DNA of 64,000 nucleotides from Mizuhopecten yessoensis (taxonomy: Eukaryota). The notes beneath the pieces were generated by a model, which saw nothing but the letters and a program-made list of their open reading frames with translations, was not told the origin of the DNA and did not search any database. The translations under genes and the position numbers were made by a program. Positions 1,992-51,240 of the stretch are shown here, piece by piece. Positions within the stretch are counted from its first letter, which is position 1, and each line of letters starts with the position of its first letter. Location: positions 139,372 to 203,371 of the forward strand of contig NW_018408812.1 in NCBI RefSeq assembly GCF_002113885.1, in the 5' to 3' direction.

Positions 1992-2174
1992 AGGATATAC
2001 TTTTTTCTCTTTTGACAAGTAGCGCATGTCTTGGAAATTGAAATCGTAATGTGTATCGGCAGCCAGTGGTTCGAGTTCTCTCCCATTCCGGAAGTGACGT
2101 GTTATCATTTTTTTTCCCAGAAGATGGGAGTGTTGTACCATAGCAAACACGTTGATACCTTCTTTTGGTACACC
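1992..2174 (-). CDS. MOXD1: Paralog A exon 9 (CuM HxH)
   Basis: GVPKEGINVFAMVQHSHLLG...YDFNFQD...VYP, 183 nt. Confidence 0.93.
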
Positions 2175-5100
2175 CTGCAAACAAAAAAGCGATCCCTTTT
2201 TGAATATTTTCCGAGATTTATTATGTATTGCAATTATTTCACCTGAAAAATCAACACATTGTCAATGTCTAATTCCAAGCATTAAGGAAGAAATGCATAT
2301 CTTTTTTAACTGATTATAGATGATAGCCAAAGGACTTTGACTAAATATCATATACATATAATTATGCTGGTTTCAAAAATTACAACAACAATATAATTTT
2401 ATCAATTTTAGATGTTATGGCAAAATAATTATTTCATAAATTATCTAGATAAATGACGTCTTGTTACATGTACCTTCCCGAGAAGTTCCGAAGGACAGAA
2501 TCCTTCGGAGACGAAGGAGGGTTCCATAGGGGGTACAAGTTGTAGTGGTGAAACACCCAATCCGATCTGTAGGAGTCCGGCATCGTGTGTACGGAGCGTC
2601 GGTGTCATGGTGATCCTGATTCCGGAGCTGTCTATAATATCTAGGGAATGGATCAAAATATACGTGTTAGGTTCGGGTATACTACATTTTCCAAATAATT
2701 CTTAGGGTTTCTTCACAGATTCACACATAGCACATGAAGACTATAACATTAATTTCAAATTCATTTTCTAGAAATTATTTATTTCCGTGAGTTTTGAAAT
2801 TTAGACTCTTGTCTTGTTTCATTATCCCTAAAGCCTTTTAAAACATTTTTTGACAATTTGCTTTCATTAGTGTAAGTGATTTGATCCACTTCAATACCTT
2901 TTTGTCTTTATTCACATTTTCCAATATTAACAATATTCGAAATTACATTCAAAATATTTTATGAATGCAAATGAATGCTGAAATTGAGATTTTTCTTTTA
3001 TGTTAAAGATCATGATGAACCTGGTTGTATGTTATTTTGAATAAGCCTTCTTTATAATATTCAGATATGCTCTTGAAATTAAGAAATTCAATAAAAAATG
3101 TTAGTTCTCGAAATGTCGAAGTATATAATTGACGTTGCCTGTTTAATTTGAGAAATAGCTGCCTTATATTCTCTCTATAAATAAAAAATAAAAAATGCAA
3201 CCAAAATAGAACATTTAATTATATGGAGCTGTAATTCATTTTCTATCTAGGTATATTGTGACGTCAACTACCTGATTTAGCCAGTGGGTTATCGAAGTGT
3301 GTCTCCATGACAAAGAAGTCGGGGTCAGCATCCGTCCCGAGGGAGTACCCGGCGGTAGGGGGATAATAGAACGTCTGCCAATAAAAAATAAGAACAGGCA
3401 CTAACATTTAAGATAAAATACAAACATATTTCTTAAAATAACATTCATAAGTTTAGTATGAGTATGAAGGCTAAATTTGCTTTAAACACAAACAGGAATA
3501 GAAAACGTATCTTGCAAGCTTTCGATAACGCTGTTTCATTTGTCAAGCAAGTGTGTAAATGACTGATGTCTGGACCCTAAACTGCTGTAAACAATTCACT
3601 AGGCTACAGTGTGTCTAATCAGTAAAGTCGGCTGTCAAAAATCATAGCAACTTATCGCCCAATAGCAATCCGACTTTCTATGACTTTGTAGGTAACAGAA
3701 TAGACCAATCAACCTGGAAGTTTCTCGATCAGATATTGTGTTGTCCAGGTGTACCTCATATTTGGGCACATTAATTGATGTTTTGGACATTTTGGTAGCG
3801 ATTTGGAGAGGTCTACGGAGGAGAGTAACCTAATTAGAGTACTTCACTTATGAAATCCAATTAATTCATCCCCAAAAACCGATCCATGTAGAAGGTGTTT
3901 TGATAATTTAGCACTTTTGCTCATATGATTGAACTGCATATGTATACCTTAGCATACAATATTCGATGTCATCTATCATCCAAATCTCTCTCCGCTTAAG
4001 ATATTCCATGTTTTGTATGATGACCCAGCCAACCCCAATCTTAACCCCTTTTTAAGTCCACTATGCTTTAGTAGAAATTTTGTTCACCAGATACCAAGGA
4101 GATACGTACCTCTCCCCCAATGGCCCACGCCAATATCACCTTGCTGAGGCACCCACGAAGGGGTTCCGGTACAGTCTCACCTTTTTCACACCGGAAGTGG
4201 GCGCCGTCATAGGAGGCCAATTCCGCAGCACGCTTATCGCATTTAAATATGAGTATGTGGTGAACGTTCAGCTCATTTCCAGGTGTAACTATTGGTTCGA
4301 ACTGAAGGTTAAAATAGGACATAACAAATAATATTAACGTATACACTAATCGCTTTTACAAGTTTCATGAACACAAGTGCTAAAAATTTTAAATATAAAG
4401 TTCAGTTCTATACCTTAAATATATTTAATTATTTCTTAACATTGGAAGTGTGCTGAGCTCTTTACGTACACGAAACCTTAAATCGTACACCTGGTTAAAA
4501 TTTGCTACTTATCATAGCAATCTCCTTATTCGTAATCGACACAGTAAATCACATTAATACCTTGATCATGTGGTGCTTCTTGGTCATTTGTGGCAACTTG
4601 AAGGCTCGACAAAAATAAGTCGTGGTGTCGGACGGAAGGTGGTACTGAGTAGTGACAGAAAAATAATCAGTTTGAACTTTTCGTAAAAAAGAAAGACAAT
4701 CAACGTCGTCTACAGTAATTGTACCGTATGATATAAAAATGTTACATCTAATACACAAAACTAAACAAAAAAGTGTACTATAATCAAACAAGAAAAAACG
4801 CAATGGTCCAGTTACACAAGATAATGTGGCGTCAATCAAGTATTTTTCTGTTCCCATTTCAACATTATTATGAGGTGAGGTCGAATACCTGTGGAAATTG
4901 ACAAAAAGCTTCGAATCCTGTTTAATATAAGGATTATTTTTGGTAAATCATGATTATTTATTGCAGACTCATGATGTCCTTTGTAGGCTAATGACGTTAC
5001 ATCAAAACCGACTGTCATTAACATTGCCCTCGGAGAAAGTACCCATCTTCATCTTTCAAAAGTGCCTTACTGTGTCCTGTGGAAACTGGTGTTTCGAAAG

Positions 5101-8100
5101 GCAACTAGCACATTGTGGAATATTTGACATTGGCTAACAAATCAGACGCCCTTAAGTAGGTCGTTGCAATTCACCTGTTCTCAGCTACATTTGGAACTTT
5201 CCAATTCAGTCAAATTTTAATGAAAGATTTGCTGTGTTTGCTTTATGTAAACTGATTAATCAATAGGCCTTCATCAAATACTACCTTAAAGTGAGCACAT
5301 TTATGATAGTGAACCATCTTTAAAAAAAACTTTGGCATGACTAATAATTCCTTACATTGAAGGAAAAACATTAAATACAGACTATAAGATGAAGATGAAC
5401 AAATGACAAAGAAAAAACCTCTGACGAGAACAGAACAACTGTTAATAGTAATTATAATAGTACGCAGCATTTATATAGCGTCCTATATAACTTGTAAAAT
5501 TACTCTAAGTCGCTTTACATCACACGAATAATAGTATTTTTACAGTGACAGTTATAGATATAGGTGATATAAAATCAGCATTAATATATTAAGTAAGAAG
5601 ACAATAATCTCAATAAGCATATATTAATAAATATGTAAAGGGTGGTGTGTACATGATGTCTGTGCAATGAGTCTAAAAACTGACGTGAAGAAGTGGTTCT
5701 TTATATCCTTATTGTGTTTAGTCAATTGTTTTTTTAACTTTCTGATAGCAGATGATAAGCTATTTAAAAAAATGGCCGGAAACCTCACAAAGCGCCGGTT
5801 TCCATAGGTCACAGTACTAGATGTTTGGACACTCGACAATGATTATGTCTCCCAACGCAGTGATCGTGACGGCTGATACAGGGTAACAAGCTCCTGTAAA
5901 TACTAGGAAGCAGTTTATGCCGTGCCTTGTGTGTTTACACCTAAAATTTGTACTGCAACCTGTATAGATTATTTAATACAAATACCGACACTAATGTGCG
6001 CAGTTAAGAAGCAAGCTTACGTTGTCGTGAAGAAAGTCGTAAGTGATTGTGTCGGAGGGGATATGGACATCGTCAGCTGTCAAGGTCGAAGACAACAGCA
6101 GGACGCTCTTTGTTCCCCGCCTGGTGGCGCCATGGTAGGGGATATAACTCGTCACGTCTTCCGGATTATAGGAGAAGATAATTCTAGTGGTGTCATCCTG
6201 TAAAATATAGTGATGGCATGCTTTTATACAAACACCCGCATACAAAACTGAAACATGTCGTTACAATATATTTGAAATTTCGAACATGTAAATGGCTAAA
6301 AAAGAAAATATCTAGAAATCGATTTGGTGTAGCAGGGATAAAACACATACTTTATATGAATTATGACATTAATATTATTAATTACCGGGGATAAGATATA
6401 TGGGTTTTTTTATAACTGGTGAACGTTTATCTTTATTCAATTGGGATAATATACCTGTTATTTTATATATTTATTATAACATTACATAATTTGCTAACCA
6501 CCTTTCTATCTTTTTTGGCCATGTCTCATGTAGTAACTAGGATAATAGTTCAATGAAGATATAAAAAAAATCTCTTAATAAATACACGTATAATATACGC
6601 ATGGTTTTGCACACGTACCGTAATGACCATGTCGCCAACACTATCACATGTGTTGAGTTTGCGCACAAAGGTGAGGATTGTCCCGGATGCAGTTTCCTTG
6701 CCAGCGATAAGGAACCAGTCTTGTGATTGGTCAACTACTGGTGGAGCATGCTGGGTAGTGTGATAGTCCTGTGAAACAGACAAAATTTGAATTTATAATC
6801 CAGTATAAATCAAAACAGATGATGTAACTATCTAAAGGAAGACAGATGAAAACCGAATAAAAAATACTTGATTTAATTATATGTATTCGAATTGATTTAA
6901 ATTGTTTAATTTTTTCCCCATTTTAAATGATTAAATTCTGTGTACAACAAAAATGCTTCCTAATTACAAATTCAAGTGGATAATTTCGATTTGTTTTCAC
7001 TCCTGACCTTGCTTGTAACTACATATTATTTGTAACATTGCAGTCTAATCGTTCTGATATCATTTTCCCCCAATATTCACAGAACTAATTGTATCTCCTA
7101 ACTTTTTTTTACTGTTCATCGTTACTCTTTTAGTCCTTAGGACATGATTCTCTATCACCCCTTTTGGAAATGTATTCAAAAGGTATTCTCTGGGATTGTT
7201 TATGTCCCGTAAACAAACTTTTGCTCCGTTTCTTATTTTTTTGATTTATTTTTATTATTATTATTATTCTTATTTCTTCCACTTTCTTCCGCCGACGAGT
7301 TTTCCGAAATGTTTTTCGAAAACCGTAAGGCGGAATTCAACGAAACTGTTCATGAGTGTTCGTGTATGACAGGCGGTGCGCAAGAGTATTTTCGTTTTTC
7401 GATCGGTAATCCGACTGGTCAGCCGGACGGTGGCCTCTGATTGGTCGAAATTTAAATATTGTCCGATTTCGATCAAATTTGATATGTAGGTGAATCATGG
7501 GACAACGATCATTCAACCCCCATTTCCTGTTCTGTGATTGGTCAAAACTTAAATATTGTCAAATTTTGATCAAATTTGATCACTCGGCCCCCATTTCCTG
7601 GCCTCTGATTGGTCGAATTTTAAATATTGTCCAAATTTGATCAAAATTAGTATGTAGGTGAATCATAGGACAATGATCACTTCCGTAGTTTAGATTTCAC
7701 ATTTCAACAAAATGACCGCCGTTTTTTTCCTCTGATTGGTCAAAATTTAAATACTGTCCGATTTGGATGCAATTTGGTGCATAGGTGTAGTATGGCACTA
7801 CAAATACAACTGCGGTGTTTGTTTTGTGATTAAACACAATGGCTTCCAATTCATGACCTCTGTTCGATTTTTATGAAAATTGGTACATATGTATATAGGG
7901 GTATAAGGGGACTGTGAATAACCCTGCATATAATTTGTTACCATATAGCAACCACACGGAGGCTTCTGCTTGGTCGAAATTTAGTTATTGTTCGATTTTG
8001 ATGACAATTAGGGGACTGTTAATTCAATCGCACAGGAATCGTTGCCATAGCAACCACACAGACACTTCTGATTGGTTGCGATTCAGATATTATGCGATGT

Positions 8101-10295
8101 CACTCAAATTTAGTATGTATATTGTAAGTGTATTATGGCATTGCGAACCTTTTCTGATGCATCTTTGCGACTATGGGGGTAGTTTGAGGGACATCAGTAA
8201 TGGTCCCCTATTACAATTAGTACTTGTTATTATTATTTAGCCACAAGTATCAATCCTCGGATTAAGGTTTCTTTTCCTTTATTCTTAATTTAGAGAGATA
8301 CATCATTACACCAAGCAATTATAAATATTGTTAAAAAAAGCCATTCTCTTAACTTTCAATCCGCACACACTTTAATATCTCAGAGCTAGAGTATGAAAAA
8401 TGTACTGTGAGGATCACTAAAAGTGCGTGTCATACATATATGATATTACATATTTTTCAATTCTCTGATCAATGGATAAGACAACGAATAGTAATTTATT
8501 ATTGCATAAAATAATTTTGATTTCAGTAGGCTTGACAATGTAACACTCCATCCACGGCGATTACATATATGTTTCACAAAATTACACTTTAACACTTATA
8601 TGAGATGTTCCTGTCTCCCTCATACCTAATTGTGCACGTAATAGCCAATGGTGAAGGTGTTGTCATCATTGGTCTAATCTAGTCTGCACATAAAAGACAT
8701 TATAGGCATACCTTGAAGTAGGTTTGACCATCCTTGACTCCGCCCACGATGACGTCAGCAGGGAACATCTTTCCATTCGGGGAGATTCCAAAACCAATGT
8801 ACCCATGCGTGTTCACGTGTGTCTCAAAGGTCACGTGGGTGGCATTGGTGCTCCAAAATAGCCAGTAGTTACCCTCGGTATCAAGTTGTACATAATGCTC
8901 AAAATGTCGAGTTGGCGTCGGCTTTGATATCTGTAAGATTTGATTGAATTAATACAAACAAAATAAATGTATTATTTCTGAAAGCTATAATGAATAAAAA
9001 TGCGAATAAGTGCTAAATTGTCACCTCATGTCTATATGTGGTTTGAATTGTGAGGTATAATGATTAAATATACGACATTTTATATAGTGCCACATCTAGC
9101 TAGAATTAGCCACACTAAAGCGCTTTACAGTACATACATGTAGATATACAATTTATACAATCAATACAACTAGCATATACATTAATTAATACAATCTTGT
9201 GGAATTCGCAGGAGCTGCCTAATCAGGCGATAACTACTAGTCATATGCCACCTGGCTGATATATTCCTATGTGTGTATGCCTGCGTGTGTGCTGGAGATG
9301 TATTGTGTTTTGTTTGTTGTGGGACTGTGCTTCCAAAGGTATCATTTGTAGTGCCACCTCACTTAATTGCTACAGCACAAATACCGCAGACCATTTTATA
9401 CACTTCCGAGGTTGTTGGAGTTGTGTGGGCACTTTTTCTGACTATTCAATGCGTACAGCGACTTCATTTGCTGATGATTCACAACAAGCTGTGTGTTATC
9501 AGTGTATGGATTGCAGTACCTTTTATAGTGCGTGAATGCAAAATGTCTATGGATCGTTCGATAGTTATGTTGTTGACTATTGAAGATATTGATACGCTAA
9601 ACACACATTTTTATTTTACAGCTTAATTAGTACTATCTTACGCCCATTATGAAACAACTGACATTTAAACAATATGAGGACGTAACATTACCGGCATTTA
9701 CCTAAAGTTGACATGACAGGTTTCATCACTGGAACAGAAGACGCTTATCCGTTCGGAACATCTGGTCGTATTCTCCTTGTTCTTTTGTCAAGTGTCCATA
9801 TTTAAATATCTCCATGGTTTTAATTTCGCCCTAGCTTCATTGATGTTGGGTTCTAATCACGTTTTTGTCTGGTATTTTCTTATTACATTTTTTTCTCGAA
9901 TACTTGGACATAAAAATGAAGTGTGGAATAATAGATTATTAAGTTTGCATACTGTTTGTTGACGTAGATGTATTTTTGTTAATTTTTATGTAATATTATA
10001 ATAGGTATTATAATATGAAAGACGTCAGAAGTCTTCTTCATGTCAAGTTGAAGTAGAGAACTAGCAAAACAAGGAGCAGATACAAAAATAACCGATTTGC
10101 TGAAAGAAATGAGAAATACATCCATTAATAAACAGTCAAAAAACGTATAATGATTCTCACCTGAACAGAACTTGTACTTCTAACCTCCCGCTCCTTAATC
10201 AGCTGGGCAAGCCTGACATCGTCAACGACATCTGTCGAGTGCACCAGACAGAACGTCAGCAATCCTGCAAAAACAGTCAGTTTAAACGTGGCCAT
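1992..10295 (-). CDS. MOXD1: DBH-like monooxygenase (MOXD1-like) paralog A, 3'-partial gene model (exons 1-9, 470 codons in the window)
   Basis: Exons 10295-10161, 8930-8712, 6768-6619, 6197-6021, 4644-4561, 4301-4110, 3374-3272, 2640-2474, 2174-1992, all GT-AG and frame-consistent. Signal peptide, DOMON domain, CuH ligands (NVHHI, METHF) and CuM ligands (QHSH). Possible upstream in-frame ATG at 10301. Confidence 0.93.
2474..2640 (-). CDS. MOXD1: Paralog A exon 8
   Basis: DIIDSSGIRITMTPTLR...EGFCPSELLGK, 167 nt. Confidence 0.92.
3272..3374 (-). CDS. MOXD1: Paralog A exon 7 (third CuH His)
   Basis: TFYYPPTAGYSLGTDADPDFFVMETHFDNPLAKS, 103 nt, phase-1 end. Confidence 0.92.
4110..4301 (-). CDS. 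MOXD1: Paralog A exon 6 (CuH His-His)
   Basis: FEPIVTPGNELNVHHILIFKC...AWAIGGE, 192 nt. Confidence 0.93.
4561..4644 (-). CDS. MOXD1: Paralog A exon 5
   Basis: YHLPSDTTTYFCRAFKLPQMTKKHHMIK, 84 nt. Confidence 0.92.
5450..5930 (-). mobile_element. L2-type LINE 3' fragment (degraded)
   Basis: Minus strand reads YLQELVTLYQPSRSLR...TVTYGNRRF...NSLSSAIR, typical of an L2 ORF2 C-terminus, followed by an L2-like tail TGTAAAGCGAC...GACGCTATATAAAT and TAT repeats. Confidence 0.65.
6021..6197 (-). CDS. MOXD1: Paralog A exon 4
   Basis: DDTTRIIFSYNPED...YHGATRRGTKSVLLL...FLHDN, 177 nt. Confidence 0.93.
6619..6768 (-). CDS. MOXD1: Paralog A exon 3 (DOMON)
   Basis: DYHTTQHAPPVVDQSQDW...RKLNTCDSVGDMVIT, 150 nt. 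Confidence 0.93.
7252..8238 (+). mobile_element. Non-autonomous Helentron/HINE-like element with internal degenerate repeats
   Basis: TTA-repeat flanks; internal repeats of CTGATTGGTCGAAATTTAAATATTGTCCGATTT; subterminal GGGAC...GTCCC hairpin before TACTTGTT. Confidence 0.5.
8712..8930 (-). CDS. MOXD1: Paralog A exon 2 (DOMON)
   Basis: ISKPTPTRHF...GFGISPNGKMFPADVIVGGVKDGQTYFK, 219 nt, AG/GT. Confidence 0.93.
9068..9465 (-). mobile_element. SINE (5'-truncated), same family as 28615-29088
   Basis: Colinear similarity with 28615-29025; L2-like tail TGTAAAGCGCTTTAGTGTGGC. Confidence 0.85.
10161..10295 (-). CDS. MOXD1: Paralog A exon 1 (signal peptide and pro-segment)
   Basis: MATFKLTVFAGLLTFCLVHSTDVVDDVRLAQLIKEREVRSTSSVQ, donor GTGAGA; homologous to exon 1 of B and C. 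Confidence 0.88.
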
Positions 10296-11462
10296 TTCCA
10301 TTCGTCCTCTTTTCGGACTGGTGACTTTTCAAACTAGTACGGGGTTAAAATCTGTTATATAACGCCTGACTGGTATTTCACAACTGCTATCTTTAAACTG
10401 TGTAAACATTGTGAAATAAGACTCCCGTTACTTGGTAGGGTGATAGAGGAACGGTAGGATATTGCTAACATTGACAAACATTTAGGAAAAAGATTTTATT
10501 TAACATAAAAAAATTTAACAACTGTTATTGGTCCCCGATCAGATTTCCATAGGGCTATACCTGTTTTATTTTCTTCATGATTGTTTTTTCTATATGTTCA
10601 CTGATGTACAGTTTTCTTGTCAACCCTTGAATTCCTGTTAGACGTTAAACTGTCGTTACCAATGAATACGTGTTAATAGTATTGATGCAATATCACAGGG
10701 TTTTAAGATACATTTATATTAATAAACTCATAGAAGGCCTATACGAAACAGGACACAGGAAACACTAACCATTACGGGATTCATCATTTGTATGATTTGT
10801 TATGTTACTTTATCATTAAAATCCAATAAAGTTCTTTGGTATTAAAGCTCTTATATTTTTTTTATTTTTTTTTATTTACATTCAAGGTGGCGTTGTCCAT
10901 TTTTTCGACATTGTCTCTACTGATATTCTACTGAATAAGCGTTTATTATTGAAAACAAGCATCTCTCAATAAAAAAAATCTTTTATTGAATCAGACAAAA
11001 ATCGAACAAAAACTAGGTGTTTTCGACCTCTTCTGCATCACATGTGTGACGATATCAGACGTAAATCATTTGTTGAAGGGATACTCTAGATGTCTATTAA
11101 GTGATTTCCTAGCAAGGAGCCGAAAATGACAATACGAAGAGAGTAACACTGCGCAGTATCAGAATATGTCCAATTTTACTTCAATGATTTGACTATGTCC
11201 TTCATTATTTCCAAAACCAACTGCGTGGGTAGTTTTGATAAGTACTGTTAAATATTCGGCCCCCGTTACAAATAGCCTTGTAATTATTGCTGTTTTGATT
11301 AATCGCTCTTCGTGGTTTTTGATACTGGGAAACTATTAATATTTTTGCATAGCAGTAGTTTTAATAATTATCTCATCCCCAATTTTGAAGTTAGAGTTAG
11401 GGTTTCAAGGGTGTAACAAATGGAACATTTCTCTACACCTACTTTGCGGTTTATCTTATCAG

Positions 11463-13125: not shown

Positions 13126-13276
13126 ATCTTTTAGATAGGAAACACCGACAACGATAATCATGTGTCAATGAGCACAGTCTCATTTAACTAATGCGGGGAA
13201 AACATGTAAAAGCTTGCTAATGTTAATACTATCAAGCGACGTTTTTCAGCTTTTAGATTAAGACAAAGTGAACAAA

Positions 13277-14468: not shown

Positions 14469-14597
14469 ATGGCCACATTAAAACTACCAGTTTTGGTCGT
14501 ATTACTTGCCGTCTGTTTGGTGCATGCGACGGATTCGATTGACCACATTTCTCAGTTGATTAAAGAAAGACAGGCCAGAAGCACAAGGTCTGTTCAG
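14469..14597 (+). CDS. MOXD1: Paralog B exon 1
   Basis: MATLKLPVLVVLLAVCLVHATDSIDHISQLIKERQARSTRSVQ, donor GTTGGT. Confidence 0.88.
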
Positions 14598-40914: not shown

Positions 40915-40960
<46 letters not shown>

Positions 40961-40961
40961 T

Positions 40962-40998
<37 letters not shown>

Positions 40999-43769
40999 AA
41001 ATGTTTTAAGGTGGACAATGACAGTTTCATATGAAAAGCGTTCTAGAATTCTTGATTGATTTTCCGTTTGAAAAAAATGAATAATTATGTATAGTTAACT
41101 GTTTTGTAAAAAAGACTGATGAAACTCTCTTTAAATTCGCTGATACTCCCCTCAGTTTCACTAATGCTTCACTAGTGACGGTTGAACGAGCATCATTTTG
41201 GATATATTTATATTGTAAAATTTGAATATAATATGTAGAACCTTCCTCAAATTTGTGCGACAAGATGAATTTTTCGTGTACTACAATATACATTTAGACC
41301 AAGGCTTTCCATAATAACAAAGTTCATTCGTAAGACACATTCGTTATAACACTTATACATTTCAGAGTCTAATAAAATAATGATAATAAAATATTTATAA
41401 TTATGAAATACATTTCTAGATTTTACATGTAAACATGACAACAACTTGGAAATAACAGTGTTACAATTTGAATTACGTCCTGTTGCAAACCAATACTATT
41501 TACTCATACCAAATTGTATGTATACTTGACAAAATACAGGTAAGTCATAATTTTGTTATGTATATACTTATGTCATTGGAGCTCAAAGAACCCTCCTATA
41601 ACACGTGTGTTTGAATCCGTTCCATAGATATCGTTGACAGTTCCGGTTTCCGCATCACCATCACACCCACACTCCGACCACACGATGCCGCGCTCCTAAT
41701 GATAGGAATGAGTGTGGTTCCGATGCATATGATTCCCCCTCTGGAACTAGACTTCGTTTCCCAAGGATATTGTCCTCCGGAACTTCTCAGGAATGTACGT
41801 AACTAAAATTCACTAAGCTTAATTGAAAATTTGTTTTGTATTTCATTAAATTTCTGGATTCAAAGGAAGTCTTTTAAAGTTAAATATTCAAAAACCACAT
41901 TATCCTAAAAAAAAATGCCAGTTATTGCAATGCGATTTTTTGTCATTTTATCATAGTTATACATTACGTGTTTTGTACATGAAACACAAAATATTTTAAT
42001 TTCAAGGAATTATAATGAAAGGTGTTAAAATTGATCTTTGTATCTTTCATAACAAAGCTTATCACTTGAAAAATTCCTTATTGAGTAATCCGATGATGAG
42101 AGTCTTCTTCTCCGACTGAATTATATATACACCCGAGGTTCGGCGTTGAATGCCAAGATCTAAAGCGTAATTTACAGAACAATGTCTAATGTTTTGTATT
42201 CCCGAAAACTCGTGAAAATTGATCAAAGGTCGAAGGGAAAACGCCTCAATATCCTATAACTATAATAGTTGCTGCCTGTGCAATATGGGGAATGGTCAGA
42301 AGGATGAAAATTATATCGTCACTATATCGGAAACATAATAGTTATATATTCACCTTATCATTATTGTGGCGTCAATTTCACTGATACAGTGTTATGTTTG
42401 ATATAACAATCTCCTATCGTTGCGAGAAGTATTTTCTGACACTTAAGCTACAGATCGAATGTCCTCACAAGAGAAATAAAATTGACAAAATTCATTGTTT
42501 CCTTCAAGTGATCCAATTACCACTTCCAAAAACTGTAACTAAGTATTAAAAACAGGTTTTTTTCTGGCATTACTATAAAACCATGATAAATCATTTCTAA
42601 AAATAAACTATACCCTGTGGGAATTTTAAGAAAAAGAAATATGATCACAAGGGTGTATTAAGTGAAAAAGTGCGAGGTTAGACCGGGGTTCGAACCCTGG
42701 ACTTTAGATTGTAATATAGACTATTGATGTAACCGATTGGGTCAACGGCAGTGTACTAGCCCGAATGTATTACAGTTATTTCCAAACGGAGGTTAAATTG
42801 AGGTTACTGTTTGTAGGAAAAACTACAGTGTAGTGGGACAAAGATAATTAAATATCATTAATGTTTGACTCTTTAATTAAATTTTCTGATATTTCGTTGC
42901 ACTTCTACTATGAGATTTATATATCATTATCATAAAAATAAAACAGGTGATTCTTAGGTATCCTATGTGAATCTAACTATCGATACATAAACCGAACATT
43001 AACATGAAAGATATGAAACGCGGTAAGATTTAATGTTAATTTGTCTTGAATGTACATTAGTACGTTTAGACTATTTGTTAAAAAAAAGAAAACCCGAAAT
43101 TCTTCACATTTCAAAATGTTATTACATGTGTTTTTCTACTCTAAAAACATTTTATTTCCTTCTTCGCAGTTTTTTAACAAATAGTATAGTATGTTGTTTA
43201 TCTTTGTCTCCTATACCTTTATTATACCTGTAATTTTAAAACCGACTCAGTTACGTTGTGTAGGGTTTTATTTAATTTGGACTCCTCCTAACTGGAAGAG
43301 GTCTGTGTATTGCTGTCTGCCATTGTTATTACCCGACGATCGACACTTCTGTTTTCTGATTGGTCAACATATCATTTGTCACGGAATGTCTCCTATCTTT
43401 ACTTTAATTGAAGTTGTCGGCTTGTATTGTTGACGTCTTGCACAGGTGTCCGGGGTTGCAAGTCAACATCTTATTCTGTAAAACTCTGAGCATGGTATCG
43501 GCCAATCGCTGCAAAGAAAAAGTTAACATCATTTATTTTTTTTTAATTTTATTTTTTTATTTTCAAAGGTTTTCAGAACATGTACATTATACAGAACATC
43601 ACATCAACACATATCCACACATTCACACATATCTACTATTGAAATTATCAGCAACCTCAACCTCCTCATCATCCTCATCATCTGATGCTGATTTTATACA
43701 ATCACCAAGACATATTCAATTTTCACACACTTTCACACATAGAATAGACAAAACAAATGGACAAAGAGC

Positions 43770-43806
<37 letters not shown>

Positions 43807-46800
43807 AGACTGCCAAATCTGAGAAGATACTAAATAAAATAAATAACTGCTGTGAGTATTTGTCAATATTTTGTTTTTTTTAAGTAGAATAACAACTAAT
43901 AACTTAATATAAATAGTCATAATATTCAGGGTTAGTTGAGGTCAAGCTCTACTAATTTTAACCATTTTTCCCATTCAGAAGTAAATCTTCTAAGGCCTTG
44001 TTCCCCTTTACCACGAGCAATATATTTCTGAACCTTATAGTAATCTTTAATCGAATTGACTAAAGCCGTCACATTAAGTGACTTATGAAAACATCTGGTT
44101 TTGTATATATATTGTTTAATGAACAGAGTAATTTCATTATCAATTCTGGTATAAATTCCAGTTTGGTTGATAAAACCAAAGATCATTGATTCTTTATTTA
44201 GTGAGAAAGGAATAGTGAGAGCACTTAAAAGACTTTCAAAATTGCTCAGAAATTTTTGTACTTCCCTGCATTCCCATAAAACGTGGGTAATTGTCTCCCT
44301 TTCTATGATACAAAAAACACAGTGTGGGTTATTTACAAGTCCAATTTTGCATAAATAAGAATTGGTTGTTAAAATATAATGATTAATTCTAAATTGCAAC
44401 CATTGCAATTTTGTATTTTTTGTAACCCTGAAAGGAATAGCATATATTTTCCCCCAAGTTTCCTGATTATAGTCGAATATAGTTCCCCATTTTGTTTGAG
44501 CAGTTATTGATGCATTATTTCTGATAAGTATATTATAGAAGTCTTGAGAACCTTTTTTCTTCTTTAAAATTATTACAAGATGTAACGGTATAATTGGGTA
44601 TATCACATTTTTGTTTGGCAAATTAAGTTGTTTCAGATAATTCTTTATGCTTGTTATCAAGCCATGATATTCTAGATAATTAGTTATTGTACCATGTAGA
44701 TCACAAAATTCCTTAAAAGACAAGAAAGAGTAGTCTGTGTTGTTTTTCAACAAATCATTAATTATCATAATCCCGTTTTTAAACCACTTACTATAAAAAA
44801 CAACTTTATTACCAACAGAAATATTTTTGTTATACCATAAGGGTGTCTTAAGTAGGGCAAAATTCTCATTTTTAAACAGCTCCTCTTTTGCTCTTAATTT
44901 ATACCATGCCCTAAACACATCTTTCCAAAACACATTTTTGCAATTTCCTTGAACTTTATTAAGGTACTCGTTTCCTGAGTTAGCCAAGATATGAGGATTT
45001 ACACAAGATTTTAAAATGCTTACCCATTTACCTTCTGATCTAAAAAACCTTCTTATCCAACTTATTTTCAGAGCTTCAATAAAAGACATTAAATTAACCA
45101 TTTTTAGCCCACCTTCTTGATAATTTTGGATTATTATGTCCCGTTTAATCTTATCAGTTTTGCTATTCCATAAAAAATTGAAAAGAACAGAATTGAGCTG
45201 TTTTATAAATTTTTCAGATGGATTAGGTAAGGAAATGAACAGATGATTCATCTGAGAAATTAATAAAGATTTAATGACATTAATTCTACCAATAGGTGTG
45301 AGCAACCTTCTACTCCAGCTCTTAATAAGAGCTTTAAGTTTAACTAATTTTTTATCAAAGTTCATTTTAGGTATTTTGCAAAGATCTACATGGAAATCTA
45401 TCCCAAGAAGAGTAAATTTATTAACTCCCCATCTAAGATTCATATTTGGAAGGAGAACATCATTGCTGTATTTTTTACTGCCTATCCAGACAACTTCAGT
45501 TTTACCTACATTTACTTTAAGACCAGATATTTTTGCATAAATATTTAGTTCATCAACCGCCCCTTTCAGTGATTTTTCAGAACCATCTAATACCAGAGAA
45601 GTGTCATCTGCATACTGAGAGTTTAAGATGGGACAGTTATTAACCTTTATACCAGTTATACTCTTATTGTTTCTAAGGCGGATTGCTAAAACTTCTGCAC
45701 ATAGTATAAAAATATATGGAGCGATGGGATCTCCTTGACGACATCCACGATTTATTTTGAAAAAAGCTGATAAATTACCCCCCTGGTTTATAGCAGAGCT
45801 TGAATTACAGTGTAAAATTTTGACCCAATTTCTGATATCGTTTCCAAATCCAAAATATCTAAGTACTTCGTCTATGAATTTCCAAGAGACAGAATCGAAA
45901 GCCTTTTCAAAATCAACCATTAATAACATTCCAGGGATATCATTTTCCTCTGTATATTGCATAATGTCATAAACCAGGCGAGTATTTTCTCCTACATAGC
46001 GTCCCGATATAAATCCTGATTGATCAGAGTTTATAATTTTTTGTAAAACTAATTTGAATCTACTTGTTATTGATCCAGAAGCAATTTTGTATACAATGTT
46101 TAATAGAGAAATAGGTCTCCAATTCTTTATAAAATACTTTGATTTATTAGCCTTAGGTATACAAGTAATTATTCCCTGACGTTGTGTAATAGATAGCTGA
46201 CCATTTGAAAAACCATAATTTAATGCCCTAACCACAAAATTACCTAACTGATTCCAAAAACATTTATAAAATTCTGATGTGAATCCATCTGAGCCTGGGC
46301 TCTTATTACTTTTCATATTCTTTAGTGTTATAGATGCTTCTTTAAGTGTAATAATACCTTCCAAACTGACCGCTTCTTCAACATTTAATCTTGGAACATC
46401 AAAATCTTCTAAAAATTCATCCAAATCTATGTCATCGACTTCATTATCAATAGAATACAATTGTTCATAAAAAAATTTCACCTCATTTAATATATCTACT
46501 TGTTTAGTTAGAAATTCCCCATTTTCCTGTTGTAACTTTGGAATGATTTTTGATGTAAAATGTCTATTTTCTAAATTAAAAAAATAATTGGTAGGTTTTT
46601 CACCCTCATCAATCCATAAGGCTTTTGCACGTATTATACTCCCTTTTATCCTATGTACTCTAATCTTTTCCAATTCCTTTTTTTTCTCAAGTAACTTGTC
46701 TAAGTCTACATTATTCTCATTTTCCAGTTCCTGTATTTGATCTATTAAGGTCTTTTCCCTTGCCCAACACTGTTTCTTTTTATAGGAAGAATATGAAATT

Positions 46801-49800
46801 GACTTACCTCTAATTTCCATTAATAGTGTTTCTAAAAATAACTGATCATTTATAACAAACTGTAAATCTGAATCAGGTATATCATCTATATTTTCAGGAT
46901 TATATATAGGAAGGCAATACTGTAATTTAACTGTTTTAATAGTATCATTAATTATATTAAGATATTCCAGGTCATATAATAAGGAACTATTTAACTTCCA
47001 TAGACCTTTACCTTTTTTAAATTCGTTAAATTTTAACATAATTTTGGGGAAAGAATGGTCTGATCTGTAACCTGGATCTATACTTGTCTCACATACACTT
47101 TGTAATAAGTTCCCAGAAACCAAAAAGAAATCTAACCTAGCCTGCTTGATAGGTTTACTCCTGCGCCATGTATATCTGGAAATGTCAGCATGCTGTTCTC
47201 TAAAAACATCCACTAAATCAAAGTTATTTATTATTTCTAATATCCTTTCACGAGCCTTTGGATTATTAACATTTTTGTAGCTTTTATCACAATCTAAATC
47301 AGGATTAAGAACTAAATTAAAATCCCCACAAATAACACAGCTATCATTTTTAAACTCATAGAGAGTTTCTTCTATTTTATCATAAAAAGTTGGGTTGTCA
47401 GAGTTTGGACCATACAATGTAATTAAAGTTATTTTCTTACCTTCAATTTCTAGATCCAATGCCAAAAAATTCCCTGTCAAGTCTTTTTTTTCCTTTATCA
47501 CCTTGACTTCAAAATTGTTATTGATAAGTATTGCTACCCCCCTTGCATTAGATTTAAAAGAATTAAAATAGCAGTTATAGCCCCATTCACTCAGTAATAT
47601 TTCTTCCTGTTCATCGGTAAAGTGAGTATCTTGCAGACAGTAGATATTGTATTGCCTATCTCTTAAATAAGTAAAAACATCCTTGCGCTTAACCTTGTCA
47701 CCAAGGCCCTGGCAATTGGCAGATAATATCTTAATTCCCTCCACAACTGTTTAAGAAATTACAATGCATACAAAAATGTATGGAGTTACATCATTATAAA
47801 ACTTGTGATAATATATCTCATACAATACAAGTGATAAATATAACGCTTTATTCCTCATTTTCATTACAGGCCTTACCACAAGAGGGCATTAACGCATTTG
47901 CGGTTCTACAGCACTCCCATCTACTGGGCAAAGAAATGATGACACGTATTTACCGGAATGGAAGCGAAATCGAACCACTGGCTGTAGACAGACATTATGA
48001 TTTTGATTATCAAGACATGCGCTACCTGTCGANTTAAAATGTTAGGAATCACTCTAGTATAATCAATGATTCCGCCCCTGAAAACCTACAACGTCACATT
48101 TTCCCTAAATTAGAGCTCACACTTATCGCCAATACTAAGCTTGTTAAACGTGAGAAGTTTCCCTTGACTTATTTTGGGAGAAGGGATATAGTAAATGATT
48201 CAATAGTCTATATATGTTTATAATGAGTATATAACATGTGGGATCCCATTTGGTCTTCTCCCTCTAACTTTTCATGAATTAGACGTCACACTGTTATCAC
48301 AATAATGTGTTACCGTGGAATGACTTGGTGTATTTGGTATATTTTGTAAGTTTATTACACTGTTGTGTGGACCCATTGAAGTAGTCATTTAATGGTCACC
48401 TGATCAGTTGATCTGTGAATACTCTCATCATGTGACCATAGTAGTTGAGGAAACGCCAAATACGAACCTCTCGAACGAACAACTTAATATAATAAACCTA
48501 TTGTTATAACAACTGTAATACAGGAATTATCGTTATAGATTCTACTTTGTAAAATACTCTGATGGGTAAAACATTGCATAAAAGGTATTTATTTAGTTTT
48601 ATTTATCAAGGGGTGAAAACATTACTCCATAGTATAAAACCTCAGATTTTCTTTTGATTTTTTTTTCAGGATGACAAAATCGAGGTGAAATGTGTTTACG
48701 ATTCAAGCAACAAACAAACTATTACAAAGGTAAGTAACAATGCAGTCTTTGTTATGTTTTAGTCCCCAAAGTTTGATGGTCAGAGTTATCTCTCTTACGT
48801 AGTGGCACGGTTCATAATACACACATTTAACAGATAAGTTCATTTGCAATTTACCAGTCCTCCTGTAAATGTTTAAATTCATAAATTAAGGGTTTGTTAC
48901 GCACCTGCTCTCTGATTCTATAGTAGCTTAGACAATTTGGATATCCTACTTTTTGTACCCTAGCATAATCGATGAGTCCTCATACAATTATGTAAGACGA
49001 ACCAGCTGTATGTTGTTGCAGTTTTATCCATTTACTGTATCTATCTTTAACTCATTGGCCCCTGAAGACACATTTGAACTCTTCCAGTTCAAAGGGTTCG
49101 AATAGTTCATTATGAAAATTCAGGGGTGTATGAGTGTTACGTTCATCGGTTAAGGAGGACGTTGTGATTGCTATGGAAGTGTGAGTCGGGTAGAGTCTAA
49201 GATATAGATTAGTTATATCAGGTATTTTCATAAGAGGTATTGTTTCATAATTACACTCAATAATGATATGCAACAAGGTTGGCGATATGCTATGAGTGTT
49301 TTGAAGTACATGTTAATTTAACTCTATTTACAAATTCTCTACATAAGTATCAAAGTGAGATTTGTTTCTCGAAGAAAGAAAACCGGAACATCAATAAAGA
49401 ATAATCATGATTAAAATTTTGTAAAATATAAAATATGCATACACGTGAAAATAATATGTGCATGTACTTATTTATTGTGAGACCGTACACATATACGTGT
49501 GCGCTACTAGCGCTTGAGAATGTGTTCTTCTGCACAATGAATTTCTGCCTGATGTTGGATTATACAAATGTATTGGAAACGTGAGTTTGTATAAAAAAAA
49601 AAGTATCAGTGTAATTTGTTATATCCTTAAATGATTATAGCAAATATGTTTTTGCAAAGTTATCTTCGTGATAATGATAAAGACCGGTTTAAATTGTATG
49701 CACTGTACATGGTGTAAAGGTTGCCAAGCTAGAGGTAACTTCCCTTTAACTCAGCGATAGAACGCTCGACAAACGTTTTGGTCACGGGTTCGATCCATAG

Positions 49801-51240
49801 CGGATGCTCGTATTCTTTTCACTACCTCACTCCCATCACAAACTGGTACCGTTGCCCTTCCCCGTAACGTTCAGGGAAGTGGAGATCCTTGAAAAGGTGT
49901 AAAAGAAATAATGTCAGGGTTGCCTTCGTGGGCGAAGACTTGGAAGAAAGAGAGGTGGTAATATAACAGATGTGCATAGCTTGGCTCGAGGGAACTTCCC
50001 TTTAGCGCCCGACTAGAAAGTCTGGAATCGCAGGTTTCAAATCCAAGCTAACGCACGTGCAGTGTATTCTGTTCCCTACTTACTACAACATTCCTTTTGC
50101 ATTCTTATATCAACCTCATTCTTATATATGGTTATCAAAAGACGTTTAAATGTAACATTAACGACTGGTAGGATACCAAAGACCTTATTAATAGAAAGAT
50201 AATTTCTAAATGAAAAAGAATATGACTTTAAAAGAAATCGTTGATATAATTTGACATTATGAAGAGGTAATTTGGTACAAAAGTATACAGGTTATGATAC
50301 TTCCTTCGCTTGAATTTCTAGTGATATTAATACATAAAAGGCGATTTTCACTGCTGACGATATGATAATGATGCAATTACACAAAAAAATGATGATATCT
50401 TTATAGAGTGGTTATGATAAGGATTTTGCTATCATTTGAAGCTGGTGTATTTATGTCACAACAAAGAAGGTCGTCGTTAACGGTGTAACTTATATTACAG
50501 GGAGGACTATCTACTCACGAGGAGATGTGTGAGGCATTCATTATGTATTACCCACGTACGCAACTTGACCTCTGTCAGAGCTTACCTCTCTACAACACTA
50601 TAGATGCCGATGTTCGAAACGTCTATTCTATAATCAAGACATGGAACTGGACAGATCCGGCGGTTAGGGCTAACTTCCGGTCAGCGCTGGACCAATCTGT
50701 ATATTACCACAACGCCATTGGAAGCACTGATGCCATCAGTGTAAGATTTGTTAGAAGACAATAAGAAATTTTAGCATTGTTATACTGACTTTAAACAAAT
50801 AAATATTGTAGCTCAACTATTCAAGACCAATGCTAGTTGCATAGCAATGCACGAGTTGTGTCTATCCATTTCTGACGAAAATATTGCCCATTGTTAATAA
50901 AGTCAGAATATTTCAATAAACGCATATAGTTTTTCAATATAGTTTATAGGGCAAAATCATTCTTTGTATCTAAGGACGACAATTGATTATAAGAGAGGGC
51001 CTTTGATTGCTAAATGTCAATAACATATGTTTGAATGAAAAAAAAAACCGAGTAGTTGACAGTTTAACAGTGCTCATCTCACTCCTAAAATAGAAATGTG
51101 TGTATATTGTACGTATCGCTTATTACCTTTTAAATACTTTGGTCATATTATTTATATTACAGGCGCACATTGCGAAAACGGAGCCCCCGACAAACCACCC
51201 GTATGTAAAACCTCAGGATACCAGATGTCCCTCTGATTAA
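30570..51240 (+). CDS. MOXD1: DBH-like monooxygenase (MOXD1-like) paralog C, 12 exons, about 594 aa; end of exon 9 lost at the N
   Basis: Exons 30570-30698, 33699-33917, 34546-34695, 36111-36287, 36975-37058, 38397-38591, 40805-40907, 41628-41794, 47870-(48032, N at 48033), 48670-48729, 50501-50740, 51163-51240. No stops or frameshifts in the sequenced parts; all Cu ligands present. Confidence 0.92.
31885..32372 (-). mobile_element. tRNA-derived CORE/Deu-type SINE with internal 124-bp tandem duplication
   Basis: Head GGAGGCACGGTAGTCTAGTAG..GGTTCGAGTC; CTCCCTGGGAGCATACAGCC; duplicated block 32030-32150 / 32154-32274; (TAT)n tail. Confidence 0.85.
33699..33917 (+). CDS. MOXD1: Paralog C exon 2
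   Basis: IPRPTPTRHF...QTYFK, 219 nt. Confidence 0.93.
34546..34695 (+). CDS. MOXD1: Paralog C exon 3
   Basis: DYHTTEHAPP...GDVVIT, 150 nt. Confidence 0.93.
35141..35328. mobile_element. Fold-back MITE (about 75-bp arms)
   Basis: ATTCCGTCTTTGCGTATTGCAGAGTTATCTTCTCTT... and its reverse complement ...AAGAGAAGATAAATCTGCAATACGCAAAGACGGAAT. Confidence 0.85.
35451..35607. mobile_element. Small MITE with about 38-bp TIRs
   Basis: TAAACGTGTCGCAACGGTTCAATATCGACTGGTCCCTTT / AAAGGGACCAGTCGGTATTGAAACGTTGCGAAACGTTTA. Confidence 0.8.
36111..36287 (+). CDS. MOXD1: Paralog C exon 4
   Basis: DDTTRIIFSYNPVD...LVHDN, 177 nt. Confidence 0.93.
36975..37058 (+). CDS. MOXD1: Paralog C exon 5
   Basis: YHVPADKTIYACRAIKLPHLTSKHHMIK, 84 nt. 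Confidence 0.92.
37242..37728 (+). mobile_element. 5'-truncated LINE 3'UTR insertion with 16-bp TSD
   Basis: AACAGGTGTAATGTAA at 37226-37241 and 37729-37744; ends AATAAA...TGAAATGA; paralog B has a single empty-site copy near 19609. Confidence 0.75.
38397..38591 (+). CDS. MOXD1: Paralog C exon 6
   Basis: YEPVITPGNELNVHHVVVFRC...AWAVGGE, 195 nt (one extra codon). Confidence 0.93.
39563..39636 (+). mobile_element. Tail-only copy of the 28615 SINE family or its partner LINE
   Basis: AAAGCGCTTTAGAGTGGCTTATGTTAGCTAGATAGGGCGCTATATCAAATG then (TAT)n; TTATCAA on both sides. Confidence 0.75.
40095..40549 (+). repeat. Copy of intron-4 segment 36548-36907 inserted in intron 6 between 19-bp direct repeats
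   Basis: TGATGGCTTCTACTGTAGT at 40095-40113 and 40531-40549; 40125-40507 is colinear with 36548-36907. Confidence 0.9.
40805..40907 (+). CDS. MOXD1: Paralog C exon 7
   Basis: AFYYPPSAGFSLG...MQTHYDNPLGRS, 103 nt, AAG acceptor. Confidence 0.92.
40915..40998. repeat. (GAT)n microsatellite
   Basis: About 28 GAT units directly after the donor GTAAGTA. Confidence 0.97.
41628..41794 (+). CDS. MOXD1: Paralog C exon 8
   Basis: DIVDSSGFRITITPTLR...QGYCPPELLRN, 167 nt. Confidence 0.93.
43534..47787 (-). mobile_element. L1/Tx1-clade non-LTR retrotransposon, antisense in intron 8 of paralog C (ORF2 + 3'UTR + A-rich tail, no ORF1)
   Basis: T-rich tail at 43534-43563; 3'UTR with (TC)n and GAT/GAG repeats; candidate TSD ACATCATT at 43526-43533 and 47788-47795; left flank aligns to the uninterrupted intron 8 of paralog B. 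Confidence 0.9.
43932..47744 (-). CDS. LINE ORF2: AP endonuclease + reverse transcriptase + C-terminal CCHC (zf-RVT), 1270 codons, uninterrupted
   Basis: EN motifs NCQGL, LQDTH, GDFN, RLDFF, SDH; RT motifs WRPISLLN, DFEKAFDSV, GCRQGDP, YADD; CVFC..ETITHVLWEC. The first codon is GTG. Confidence 0.95.
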   Translation of the reverse strand: MEGIKILSANCQGLGDKVKRKDVFTYLRDRQYNIYCLQDTHFTDEQEEILLSEWGYNCYFNSFKSNARGVAILINNNFEVKVIKEKKDLTGNFLALDLEIEGKKITLITLYGPNSDNPTFYDKIEETLYEFKNDSCVICGDFNLVLNPDLDCDKSYKNVNNPKARERILEIINNFDLVDVFREQHADISRYTWRRSKPIKQARLDFFLVSGNLLQSVCETSIDPGYRSDHSFPKIMLKFNEFKKGKGLWKLNSSLLYDLEYLNIINDTIKTVKLQYCLPIYNPENIDDIPDSDLQFVINDQLFLETLLMEIRGKSISYSSYKKKQCWAREKTLIDQIQELENENNVDLDKLLEKKKELEKIRVHRIKGSIIRAKALWIDEGEKPTNYFFNLENRHFTSKIIPKLQQENGEFLTKQVDILNEVKFFYEQLYSIDNEVDDIDLDEFLEDFDVPRLNVEEAVSLEGIITLKEASITLKNMKSNKSPGSDGFTSEFYKCFWNQLGNFVVRALNYGFSNGQLSITQRQGIITCIPKANKSKYFIKNWRPISLLNIVYKIASGSITSRFKLVLQKIINSDQSGFISGRYVGENTRLVYDIMQYTEENDIPGMLLMVDFEKAFDSVSWKFIDEVLRYFGFGNDIRNWVKILHCNSSSAINQGGNLSAFFKINRGCRQGDPIAPYIFILCAEVLAIRLRNNKSITGIKVNNCPILNSQYADDTSLVLDGSEKSLKGAVDELNIYAKISGLKVNVGKTEVVWIGSKKYSNDVLLPNMNLRWGVNKFTLLGIDFHVDLCKIPKMNFDKKLVKLKALIKSWSRRLLTPIGRINVIKSLLISQMNHLFISLPNPSEKFIKQLNSVLFNFLWNSKTDKIKRDIIIQNYQEGGLKMVNLMSFIEALKISWIRRFFRSEGKWVSILKSCVNPHILANSGNEYLNKVQGNCKNVFWKDVFRAWYKLRAKEELFKNENFALLKTPLWYNKNISVGNKVVFYSKWFKNGIMIINDLLKNNTDYSFLSFKEFCDLHGTITNYLEYHGLITSIKNYLKQLNLPNKNVIYPIIPLHLVIILKKKKGSQDFYNILIRNNASITAQTKWGTIFDYNQETWGKIYAIPFRVTKNTKLQWLQFRINHYILTTNSYLCKIGLVNNPHCVFCIIERETITHVLWECREVQKFLSNFESLLSALTIPFSLNKESMIFGFINQTGIYTRIDNEITLFIKQYIYKTRCFHKSLNVTALVNSIKDYYKVQKYIARGKGEQGLRRFTSEWEKWLKLVELDLN
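47870..48032 (+). CDS. MOXD1: Paralog C exon 9 (truncated at the N)
   Basis: ALPQEGINAFAVLQHSHLLG...DMRYLS then N; 20 nt plus the donor are missing relative to B. Confidence 0.9.
48670..48729 (+). CDS. MOXD1: Paralog C exon 10
   Basis: DDKIEVKCVYDSSNKQTITK, 60 nt. Confidence 0.92.
49713..50087 (+). mobile_element. Degenerate TRIM-like element with tRNA-like sequence in both short LTRs
   Basis: Two diverged repeats containing AACTTCCCTTTA...GGTTCGATCC / GGTTTCAAATCC; TGG PBS-like site at 49844; polypurine tract at 49943-49958. Confidence 0.6.
50501..50740 (+). CDS. MOXD1: Paralog C exon 11
   Basis: GGLSTHEEMCEAFIMYYPR...TDAIS, 240 nt. Confidence 0.93.
51163..51240 (+). CDS. MOXD1: Paralog C exon 12 (terminal)
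   Basis: AHIAKTEPPTNHPYVKPQDTRCPSD*. Confidence 0.9.
   Translation, partial: AHIAKTEPPTNHPYVKPQDTRCPSD

Follow-up and report, generated by a model that had tools for sequence, protein, structure and literature searches.

A tandem array of MOXD1-like copper monooxygenase genes in the Yesso scallop and the probable nature of its products

A stretch of 64,000 nucleotides from one contig of the Yesso scallop, Mizuhopecten yessoensis (G000:C5485:139372-203371, hereafter the window), carries three genes, A, B and C, whose predicted products resemble both DBH and MOXD1, and the question raised by this locus is whether they serve neurotransmitter synthesis, act together in a hydroxylation pathway of their own, or are simply multiple copies of one MOXD1-type enzyme. 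The initial annotation of this DNA, made from the letters alone, had proposed a candidate undescribed system of secreted monooxygenases, perhaps acting in sequence. In this study, we find that A, B and C belong to a larger tandem array and probably encode soluble, MOXD1-type copper type II, ascorbate-dependent monooxygenases that work as parallel isoenzymes. The array is an ordinary tandem array of an annotated gene family, and the description as undescribed does not hold: B is identical to a public protein, A (together with a neighbour, D) and C are annotated too, and the expansion of the family in bivalves has been published.

Gene models, transcript and protein features

Six-frame Pfam scans of the genome (a 988-Mb assembly in 82,659 contigs, ~35% G+C) for exon matches to DOMON, Cu2_monooxygen and Cu2_monoox_C gave three groups of matches in the window, one on the minus strand at ~1995-8876 and two on the plus strand at ~16222-24891 and ~33753-50581, and two further groups, D and E, upstream on the same contig. 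The tandem array has five members on this one contig, in the order E (a pseudogene), D and A, followed in opposite orientation by B and C, with A on the minus strand, B and C on the plus strand, and A, B and C inside the window. The 12-exon model of B was built by hand from open frames and splice sites, and the models of A, C, D and E were obtained by DNA alignment of each B exon plus its flanks to the other loci, where the homologous exon boundaries carry AG/GT. Exon lengths of 129, 219, 150, 177, 84, 192, 103, 167, 183, 60, 240 and 75 are common to all copies, the only deviations being a first exon of 141 in A, a sixth of 195 in C and a twelfth of 117 in A and 78 in C, and amino-acid identity is 72% for A/B, 83% for B/C, 80% for B/D and 97% for D/E. 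The matching exon architecture noticed in the initial annotation is thus borne out by the Pfam exon matches and the 12-exon models alike, and the extension to the left that it had recommended located exons 10-12 of A 1.5-4.0 kb beyond the window, as expected, as well as the further paralogs, intact D and pseudogene E.

The model of B agrees with P0164, the public 'DBH-like monooxygenase protein 1 [Mizuhopecten yessoensis]', at 100% over 592 amino acids, and its transcript was followed in four raw M. yessoensis RNA-seq runs (X19, X22, X23 and X24) over window positions 19820-25800, which cover exons 6-12. The six splice junctions seen in X19 (20025|21281, 21383|21704, 21870|23197, 23379|23825, 23884|24808 and 25047|25375, with 7 to 17 reads each) coincide exactly with the modelled boundaries of exons 6-12; 17 reads span 25047 to 25375, that is exon 11 to exon 12, and a loose read end at 19832 carries the last codons of exon 5. 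Read depth runs past the stop at 25449 and is near zero beyond ~25620, and no junction leaves exon 12 in these reads, so that no further exon which might encode a membrane anchor was found for B. A few of the same junctions are present in X23, while X22 and X24 hold no exonic B reads in this region and only reads on a repeat in intron 6. Because junctions, depth and 3' end all match the model, B is transcribed, is spliced as modelled and ends in the hydrophilic tail …DTRCQH. As a separate observation, reads from all four runs pile up at 20020-20620, in intron 6, with many loose ends and mismatches, which suggests a transcribed repeat family and not a portion of gene B.

P0164 matches DOMON at 104.2 bits, Cu2_monooxygen at 128.4 and Cu2_monoox_C at 142.2, and the public proteins for C (P0169) and for A plus D (P0156) likewise lie above the Pfam cut-offs for both catalytic half-domains (30 bits for PF01082 and 23 bits for PF03712). 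The six copper ligands of B are H267, H268, H343, H422, H424 and M497, which pair with the VHH, HY, H-T-H and EEMC motifs of human DBH (4ZEL); the same alignment columns, three His of the CuH site and H-x-H…M of the CuM site, hold His or Met in A, C, D, the Chlamys farreri protein discussed below and MOXD1. All six ligands are therefore intact in A-D, as had been claimed for A, B and C. Ten mature-protein cysteines are common to A-D and MOXD1, and the one in the last exon is kept across the family. An AlphaFold model of B, computed with 48 homologs, has a mean predicted local distance difference test (pLDDT) of 91.9 and superposes on 4ZEL over 564 columns, C-terminal domain included, with TM-scores of 0.78/0.84; therefore all domains of B match the DBH fold.

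Signal-peptide cleavage was judged by hydropathy and the -3/-1 rule, which is a heuristic. The N-terminal hydropathy maximum is 1.9-2.6 over 17 residues, with a hydrophobic core of ~13 residues, and small residues stand at -3 and -1 of the putative cleavage sites (VHA, ALA, VHS), so signal peptides are predicted for A, B and C, in line with the initial annotation. The N-terminus is the sole strongly hydrophobic stretch, one window of C at residue 373 barely passing the threshold of 1.6. At the other end, B and C do terminate in the short hydrophilic tails reported before (…DTRCQH and …DTRCPSD, each followed by a stop), and none of the C-terminal ends RCQH, CPSD and LGRK is KDEL-like.

Relationship to MOXD1, DBH and PHM

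The nearest full-length relatives are proteins of other scallops (Ylistrum and Pecten, 64-78% identity), followed by those of other bivalves and of gastropods. Among the matches that bear a family name, 'DBH-like monooxygenase protein 1' and MOXD1 are the names given throughout, apart from a few 'protein 2' and a sole exception, the DBH of Chlamys farreri (CfDBH; Chlamys/Azumapecten farreri, UniProt E9JGS5); many other matches are named only 'hypothetical' or 'DOMON domain-containing'. Nothing but MOXD1-type or unnamed proteins came from a representative search with exon 9 of B and a word search with the related protein P0019, and no name of a DBH or TBH was gained from two cluster look-ups. 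A quick IQ-TREE phylogeny of 51 proteins, in which vertebrate and amphioxus MOXD1 were included and DBH, TBH and PHM left out, was assessed with the Shimodaira-Hasegawa-like approximate likelihood ratio test (SH-aLRT). It joined A-D and six scallop proteins in a pectinid-only clade (SH-aLRT 100), with B+C as the innermost group (99) and D next to them (99), and this scallop clade is nested among bivalves (97) and among molluscs (99). CfDBH stands on a neighbouring bivalve branch, and this set of taxa did not resolve the deep nodes, among them the one that links to vertebrate MOXD1. The pectinid-only clade and the mutual closeness of B, C and D agree with the lineage-specific expansion suggested in the initial annotation.

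Vertebrate MOXD1 is among the matches, at 38-43% identity, and MOXD1 is also the public annotation's name for the scallop genes. The likeness extends to the domain order (DOMON, Cu2_monooxygen, Cu2_monoox_C) and to the six ligands and ten cysteines in the same columns. The differences are that MOXD1 is single-copy whereas the scallop genes are multi-copy and in tandem, and that a hydrophobic segment forms the end of MOXD1 in vertebrates, amphioxus and Lingula whereas the scallop proteins stop 2-20 residues past the last conserved cysteine. Within the last 40 residues the maximum 17-residue hydropathy is -0.36 to 0.67 in A-D, against 1.7-2.7 at the C-terminus of vertebrate, amphioxus and Lingula MOXD1, which agrees with both the hydrophobic vertebrate C-terminus and the missing scallop anchor of the initial annotation. 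Vertebrate MOXD1 has been reported as associated with the endoplasmic reticulum (ER) and membranes, its substrate being unknown (PMC8067471). The anchor-less state of the scallop proteins is real, but it is by these alignments a property of the whole mollusc clade and not a novelty of the array, because 15 of the 15 other mollusc proteins examined also end soon after the last conserved cysteine, with maxima of no more than 0.67.

It might alternatively be supposed that A-D are duplicated true dopamine or tyramine beta-hydroxylases, making noradrenaline or octopamine in the neuroendocrine-immune system. The whole fold and all ligands do match DBH: B and human DBH (4ZEL) align over residues 54-538 (E = 1e-83) with the ligands in register, the predicted fold superposes on it, and DBH likewise has a signal sequence and is soluble. 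Moreover, the C. farreri protein (P0168) is published as 'dopamine beta hydroxylase' and treated so in reviews, being described as such by Zhou et al. 2011 as cited in PMC6282093, and bivalves are without an ecdysozoan-type TBH (bioRxiv 10.64898/2026.08.17.745212). However, identity to human DBH is ~29% in the structural alignment, and a locus on another scallop contig, C942, is much closer: in the exon homologous to exon 9 of B it scores 63.9 bits against 4ZEL and B only 34.1 bits. A 2026 preprint recognizes one DBH, several separate MOXD1-type 'DBH-like' genes and no TBH in bivalves, and its tree recovers bivalve 'DBH-like = MOXD1' with a bootstrap of 99 (bioRxiv 10.64898/2026.08.17.745212). 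In addition, CfDBH is only 47-51% identical to A-D and is matched better by another locus of the searched genome, on contig C5553, and the paralogs described in print have their expression in the gut or digestive gland rather than in neurons (PMC13212745; bioRxiv 10.64898/2026.08.17.745212).

Because C942 matches human DBH better, the preprint agrees and CfDBH is closer to C5553, A-D are on present comparisons not the genome's closest counterpart of DBH and not its 1:1 orthologs, an orthology that would have counted against the initial annotation, and we consider a duplicated neurotransmitter enzyme rather improbable; the C942 gene is likely the true DBH ortholog. DBH has a cysteine pair that forms its interchain disulfides, and this pair is not evident in B, because the C-terminal region of B has only two cysteines and both are conserved with MOXD1. 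CfDBH itself shares with A-D the same domains, the placement in the bivalve MOXD1-like clade and a hydrophilic C-terminus that has no anchor and closes with a Cys-containing tail, and differs in being another paralog and in lacking two of the conserved cysteines. Judged from this placement, what was published as a scallop 'dopamine beta hydroxylase' is a member of the MOXD1-like clade. PHM is a more distant comparison, which has the two-copper catalytic core in common with B (E ~1e-9 over residues 228-509; fold TM-score 0.62-0.79 on the PHM chain) but is without DOMON and without the DBH-type C-terminal domain, identity being ~21%. About a dozen further loci in the genome carry catalytic domains without DOMON.

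Divergence of the copies, alternative readings and neighbouring features

The ratio of non-synonymous to synonymous substitution rates (dN/dS) was 0.07-0.35 for all pairs over exons 1-11, taken by exon group, and reached 0.5-0.6 only in the 24-codon last exon. With dN/dS so low despite a dS of 0.2-1.9 between copies, the duplicates are therefore old and long-term constrained; purifying selection acts on all four intact copies, A-D, and dN/dS gave no sign of positive selection at the exon scale.

The initial annotation had gone further and proposed that the paralogs might form a coordinated, multi-step hydroxylation system, with different pockets, co-regulation by upstream blocks and one class of non-catecholamine substrates. 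The paralogs do share two non-coding blocks, as it had stated, recovered with blastn from the 1.5-kb upstream regions: a proximal one in the last ~170 bp before each ATG, and a distal one of 100-185 bp that lies 0.6-1.3 kb upstream of the genes. A dispersed repeat was considered for the distal block and rejected, since the genome holds just two strong copies of it; the block may be regulatory or may be an untranslated exon. Beyond the shared blocks, such a system would fit the retention of all four intact copies under purifying selection and the greater divergence of the catalytic exons (61-72% amino-acid identity between A and B) than of the DOMON exons (90-92%). Yet dS is 0.16-0.37 in the DOMON exons, against 0.5-1.9 in most other exons for pairs with A, and because it is the DOMON dS that is low, the contrast points to gene conversion rather than to divergence of the catalytic pockets; it fits a partial homogenisation of the DOMON exons between paralogs, the inverted pair A/B included.

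Other observations also count against a multi-step system. The copies do not differ in domain set, ligands or cysteines, and there is no accessory gene in the array: none of eight other open reading frames (ORFs) that lie between or next to the genes had a significant Pfam family, matches being confined to an ORF at 12723-13157 derived from a (CAT)n repeat and falling below the Pfam cut-offs, and Rfam and tRNA scans were without matches. Like tandem arrays occur in many molluscs; judged from shared contigs and consecutive locus tags, six or more such genes lie together in Sinanodonta, and Pecten, Ylistrum and Physella have pairs. Finally the 3' half of B, the only gene measured, was seen in just two of the four RNA runs. 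We found no evidence for enzymes acting in sequence, what is seen being a simple tandem series of similar enzymes on which purifying selection acts, and a coordinated pathway is accordingly very unlikely, parallel isoenzymes being the reading that we retain.

Could some or all copies instead be decaying, non-functional duplicates, with only one gene of the array that matters? Such decay is evident in E, where exon 11 has an in-frame stop, the donor of exon 10 is AT instead of GT and exon 1 was not found when the B exons were aligned to the locus, and it might be suspected in C, whose intron 8 houses a long interspersed nuclear element (LINE) and whose exon 9 contains a gap; expression evidence, too, covers B only. 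On the other hand, the reading frames of A, B, C and D are open, with no ligand missing and with canonical splice sites, the substitution rates given above indicate long-term constraint, and full-length ORFs of scallop relatives, A-type as well as B-type, are present on intron-free contigs of 1.9-2.7 kb, evidently transcripts. General decay of the array is thus extremely unlikely.

The initial annotation placed the left edge of the cluster at 1992 because nine exons of A, from 10301 to 1992, fall in the window and the other three beyond its left edge. Public protein P0156 (1016 amino acids) fuses exons 1-11 of A to D, from exon 2 of D onwards, via a short spurious exon, the region concerned lying left of the window at C5485:135344-131410 (L029). 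Our model of A and P0156 agree through exon 11 except for an alternative splice choice at exon 7/8, which amounts to one substitution and one extra residue in P0156. The true last exon of A (…PYVKPQDTSCQNFAGSVPGLAFLGRK, stop) is backed by Ylistrum and Pecten orthologs, and from these comparisons the public A/D fusion is wrong after exon 11 of A. D is an intact gene encoding 592 amino acids, and E, by its sequence, is a recent duplicate of D turned pseudogene. The A-type C-termini (last exon of A, P0161, P0162, P0163 and P0019) follow a hydrophobic-Gly-basic-basic pattern, with endings …LAFLGRK, …LAFLGRKKK, …LGFLGKK and …FFPGKK. Carboxypeptidase trimming and C-terminal amidation are classically signalled by this pattern, and A-type enzymes may therefore be amidated at their own C-terminus. 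Part of intron 9 of A, at 1-1859 of the window, is a minisatellite with a 52-bp unit in ~36 copies at 90% match.

The stop codon of C ends at 51240, the end coordinate of the cluster in the initial annotation. A single N at 48033, the only one in the window and either an assembly gap or a masked base, takes the last ~20 bases and the donor of exon 9; it was left unfilled and the missing residues are written X. Our model of C is identical to P0169 outside residues 447-469, and P0169 skips these 23 residues, so the public model is shortened at the assembly gap. An uninterrupted ORF of 1270 amino acids on the minus strand at 43932-47744 has Exo_endo_phos, RVT_1 and zf-RVT domains. It was rejected as part of gene C, being the ORF2 of a LINE, with endonuclease and reverse transcriptase domains, that lies antisense in intron 8 and ends 126 bp before exon 9. 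Between A and B, at 12746-13020, lies the (CAT)n microsatellite of ~89 units, which makes a spurious low-complexity ORF of 144 amino acids.

Table 1. Positions of the array genes and related features (window positions unless a contig is given; negative positions lie left of the window)
Feature	Position	Strand	Basis or remark
Gene A, exons 1-9 of 12	1992..10301	-	Pfam exon matches and model transfer from B; protein 610 amino acids
A exons 1-5	10301-10161, 8930-8712, 6768-6619, 6197-6021, 4644-4561	-	
A exons 6-9	4301-4110, 3374-3272, 2640-2474, 2174-1992	-	
A exons 10-12	-1500..-1559, -3324..-3563, -3911..-4027	-	Off window to the left
Gene B, complete coding sequence, 12 exons	14469..25449	+	All introns GT-AG; 592 amino acids
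B exons 1-6	14469-14597, 16168-16386, 16834-16983, 17940-18116, 18864-18947, 19834-20025	+	
B exons 7-12	21281-21383, 21704-21870, 23197-23379, 23825-23884, 24808-25047, 25375-25449	+	
Gene C, 12 exons	30570..51240	+	Model transfer from B; ~594 amino acids, ~7 residues undefined (X)
C exons 1-6	30570-30698, 33699-33917, 34546-34695, 36111-36287, 36975-37058, 38397-38591	+	
C exons 7-12	40805-40907, 41628-41794, 47870-48032 (cut by N), 48670-48729, 50501-50740, 51163-51240	+	
CuH ligands H267 and H268 of B	19873..19878	+	Third ligand, H343, at 21356-21358; alignment to 4ZEL and MOXD1
CuH codons of A	4262-4257 and 3299-3297	-	Alignment
CuH codons of C	38436-38441 and 40880-40882	+	Alignment
CuM ligands H422 and H424 of B (HSH motif)	23239..23247	+	Met ligand M497 at 24832-24834
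CuM H-x-H of A	2132-2124	-	Met off window
CuM ligands of C	47912-47920 and 50545-50547	+	Alignment
Predicted signal peptide of B (MATLKLPVLVVLLAVCLVHA, then TD)	14469..14528	+	Hydropathy and -3/-1 rule
Predicted signal peptide of A	10301-10236	-	Hydropathy and -3/-1 rule
Predicted signal peptide of C	30570-30629	+	Hydropathy and -3/-1 rule
Last exon of B, hydrophilic Pro/Thr-rich tail (AHTTTTEPPTKHPYVKPPDTRCQH, stop)	25375..25449	+	Sequence and RNA junction
Last exon of C (…DTRCPSD, stop)	51163-51240	+	Sequence
DOMON exons 2-3 with low dS	A 8930-8712, 6768-6619; B 16168-16386, 16834-16983; C 33699-33917, 34546-34695		
Distal upstream non-coding block	B 13271..13455 (+); C ~29779-29953; A, weaker, ~11460-11561 (-)		blastn, 1.5-kb upstream regions
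Single N, assembly gap or masked base	48033	.	
Paralog E	C5485:38805-50343	-	Loci L032/L033; 97% identical to D
Further DOMON-bearing copper monooxygenase gene	G000:C942:926532-959796		Much closer to human DBH
Further DOMON-bearing copper monooxygenase gene	G000:C5553:887510-891723		Best match of Chlamys farreri 'DBH'

Proposed role and significance

From the order of elements in the proteins, a cleavable-looking signal peptide followed by DOMON, the two-copper core, a DBH-like C-terminal domain and a short hydrophilic tail, we propose that they enter the secretory pathway, would receive copper there and would be released as soluble enzymes. As in the rest of the family, the two uncoupled copper sites would then use electrons derived from ascorbate, together with O2, for hydroxylation of a C-H bond of the substrate. 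The digestive gland or gut is the most likely site of action, since published work places bivalve DBH-like paralogs there. The copies seem to have arisen by duplication within scallops, the latest of them (B, C and D) in the Mizuhopecten lineage, and to act as parallel isoenzymes and not as steps of one pathway.

Several points weigh against this proposal and keep it short of certainty. The assignment to MOXD1 is based on names, the separate DBH-like locus and the tree of the preprint, our own tree being without DBH, TBH and PHM. The related CfDBH has been described as a dopamine beta-hydroxylase, and so A-D may have a catecholamine substrate. Evidence of expression is limited to B, to two of the four RNA runs, to an unknown tissue and to low depth, and the integrity of C is only partly established, as its exon 9 is incomplete at the gap and an intact LINE lies just upstream of that exon. 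The activity, secretion, substrate and tissue of A-D are known here as inference only.

Much of the context is already on record. According to the glass scallop genome report, whose comparison includes M. yessoensis, DBH-like monooxygenase protein 1 is among the expanded families and 13 copies show high expression in the digestive gland (PMC13212745), and the preprint gives DBH-like paralogs of the Mytilus larva overlapping expression in the larval gut (bioRxiv 10.64898/2026.08.17.745212). The present array agrees with these published expansions in family name, multi-copy state and scallop or bivalve lineage; they differ in reporting copy numbers and expression, and their accessible text is without gene structures, anchor loss or this array. 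Because genes, family name, bivalve multiplicity and likely site of expression are already public, only the chemistry remains to be found, and what is added here is the array of five, the completed exons of A, RNA support for B and the correction of two public models.

A broader and more speculative view is that molluscs have made a membrane-bound, ER-resident MOXD1 into soluble, secreted isoenzymes by loss of the anchor, with tandem expansions for extracellular chemistry in the digestive gland or gut. These enzymes would act outside neurotransmitter synthesis on dietary or xenobiotic molecules, for example biogenic amines or metabolites of algal toxins, with partly different substrate ranges. 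While we hold this view to be unlikely as it stands, it would matter if it were true, as naturally soluble scallop enzymes could then reveal what MOXD1-type enzymes act on, MOXD1 being among the few copper monooxygenases whose substrate has been unknown for more than 20 years. The scallop copies are anchor-less, multi-copy and, as shown for B, transcribed, which makes them convenient to express and to screen for substrates, the digestive gland being an obvious place to look for candidates.

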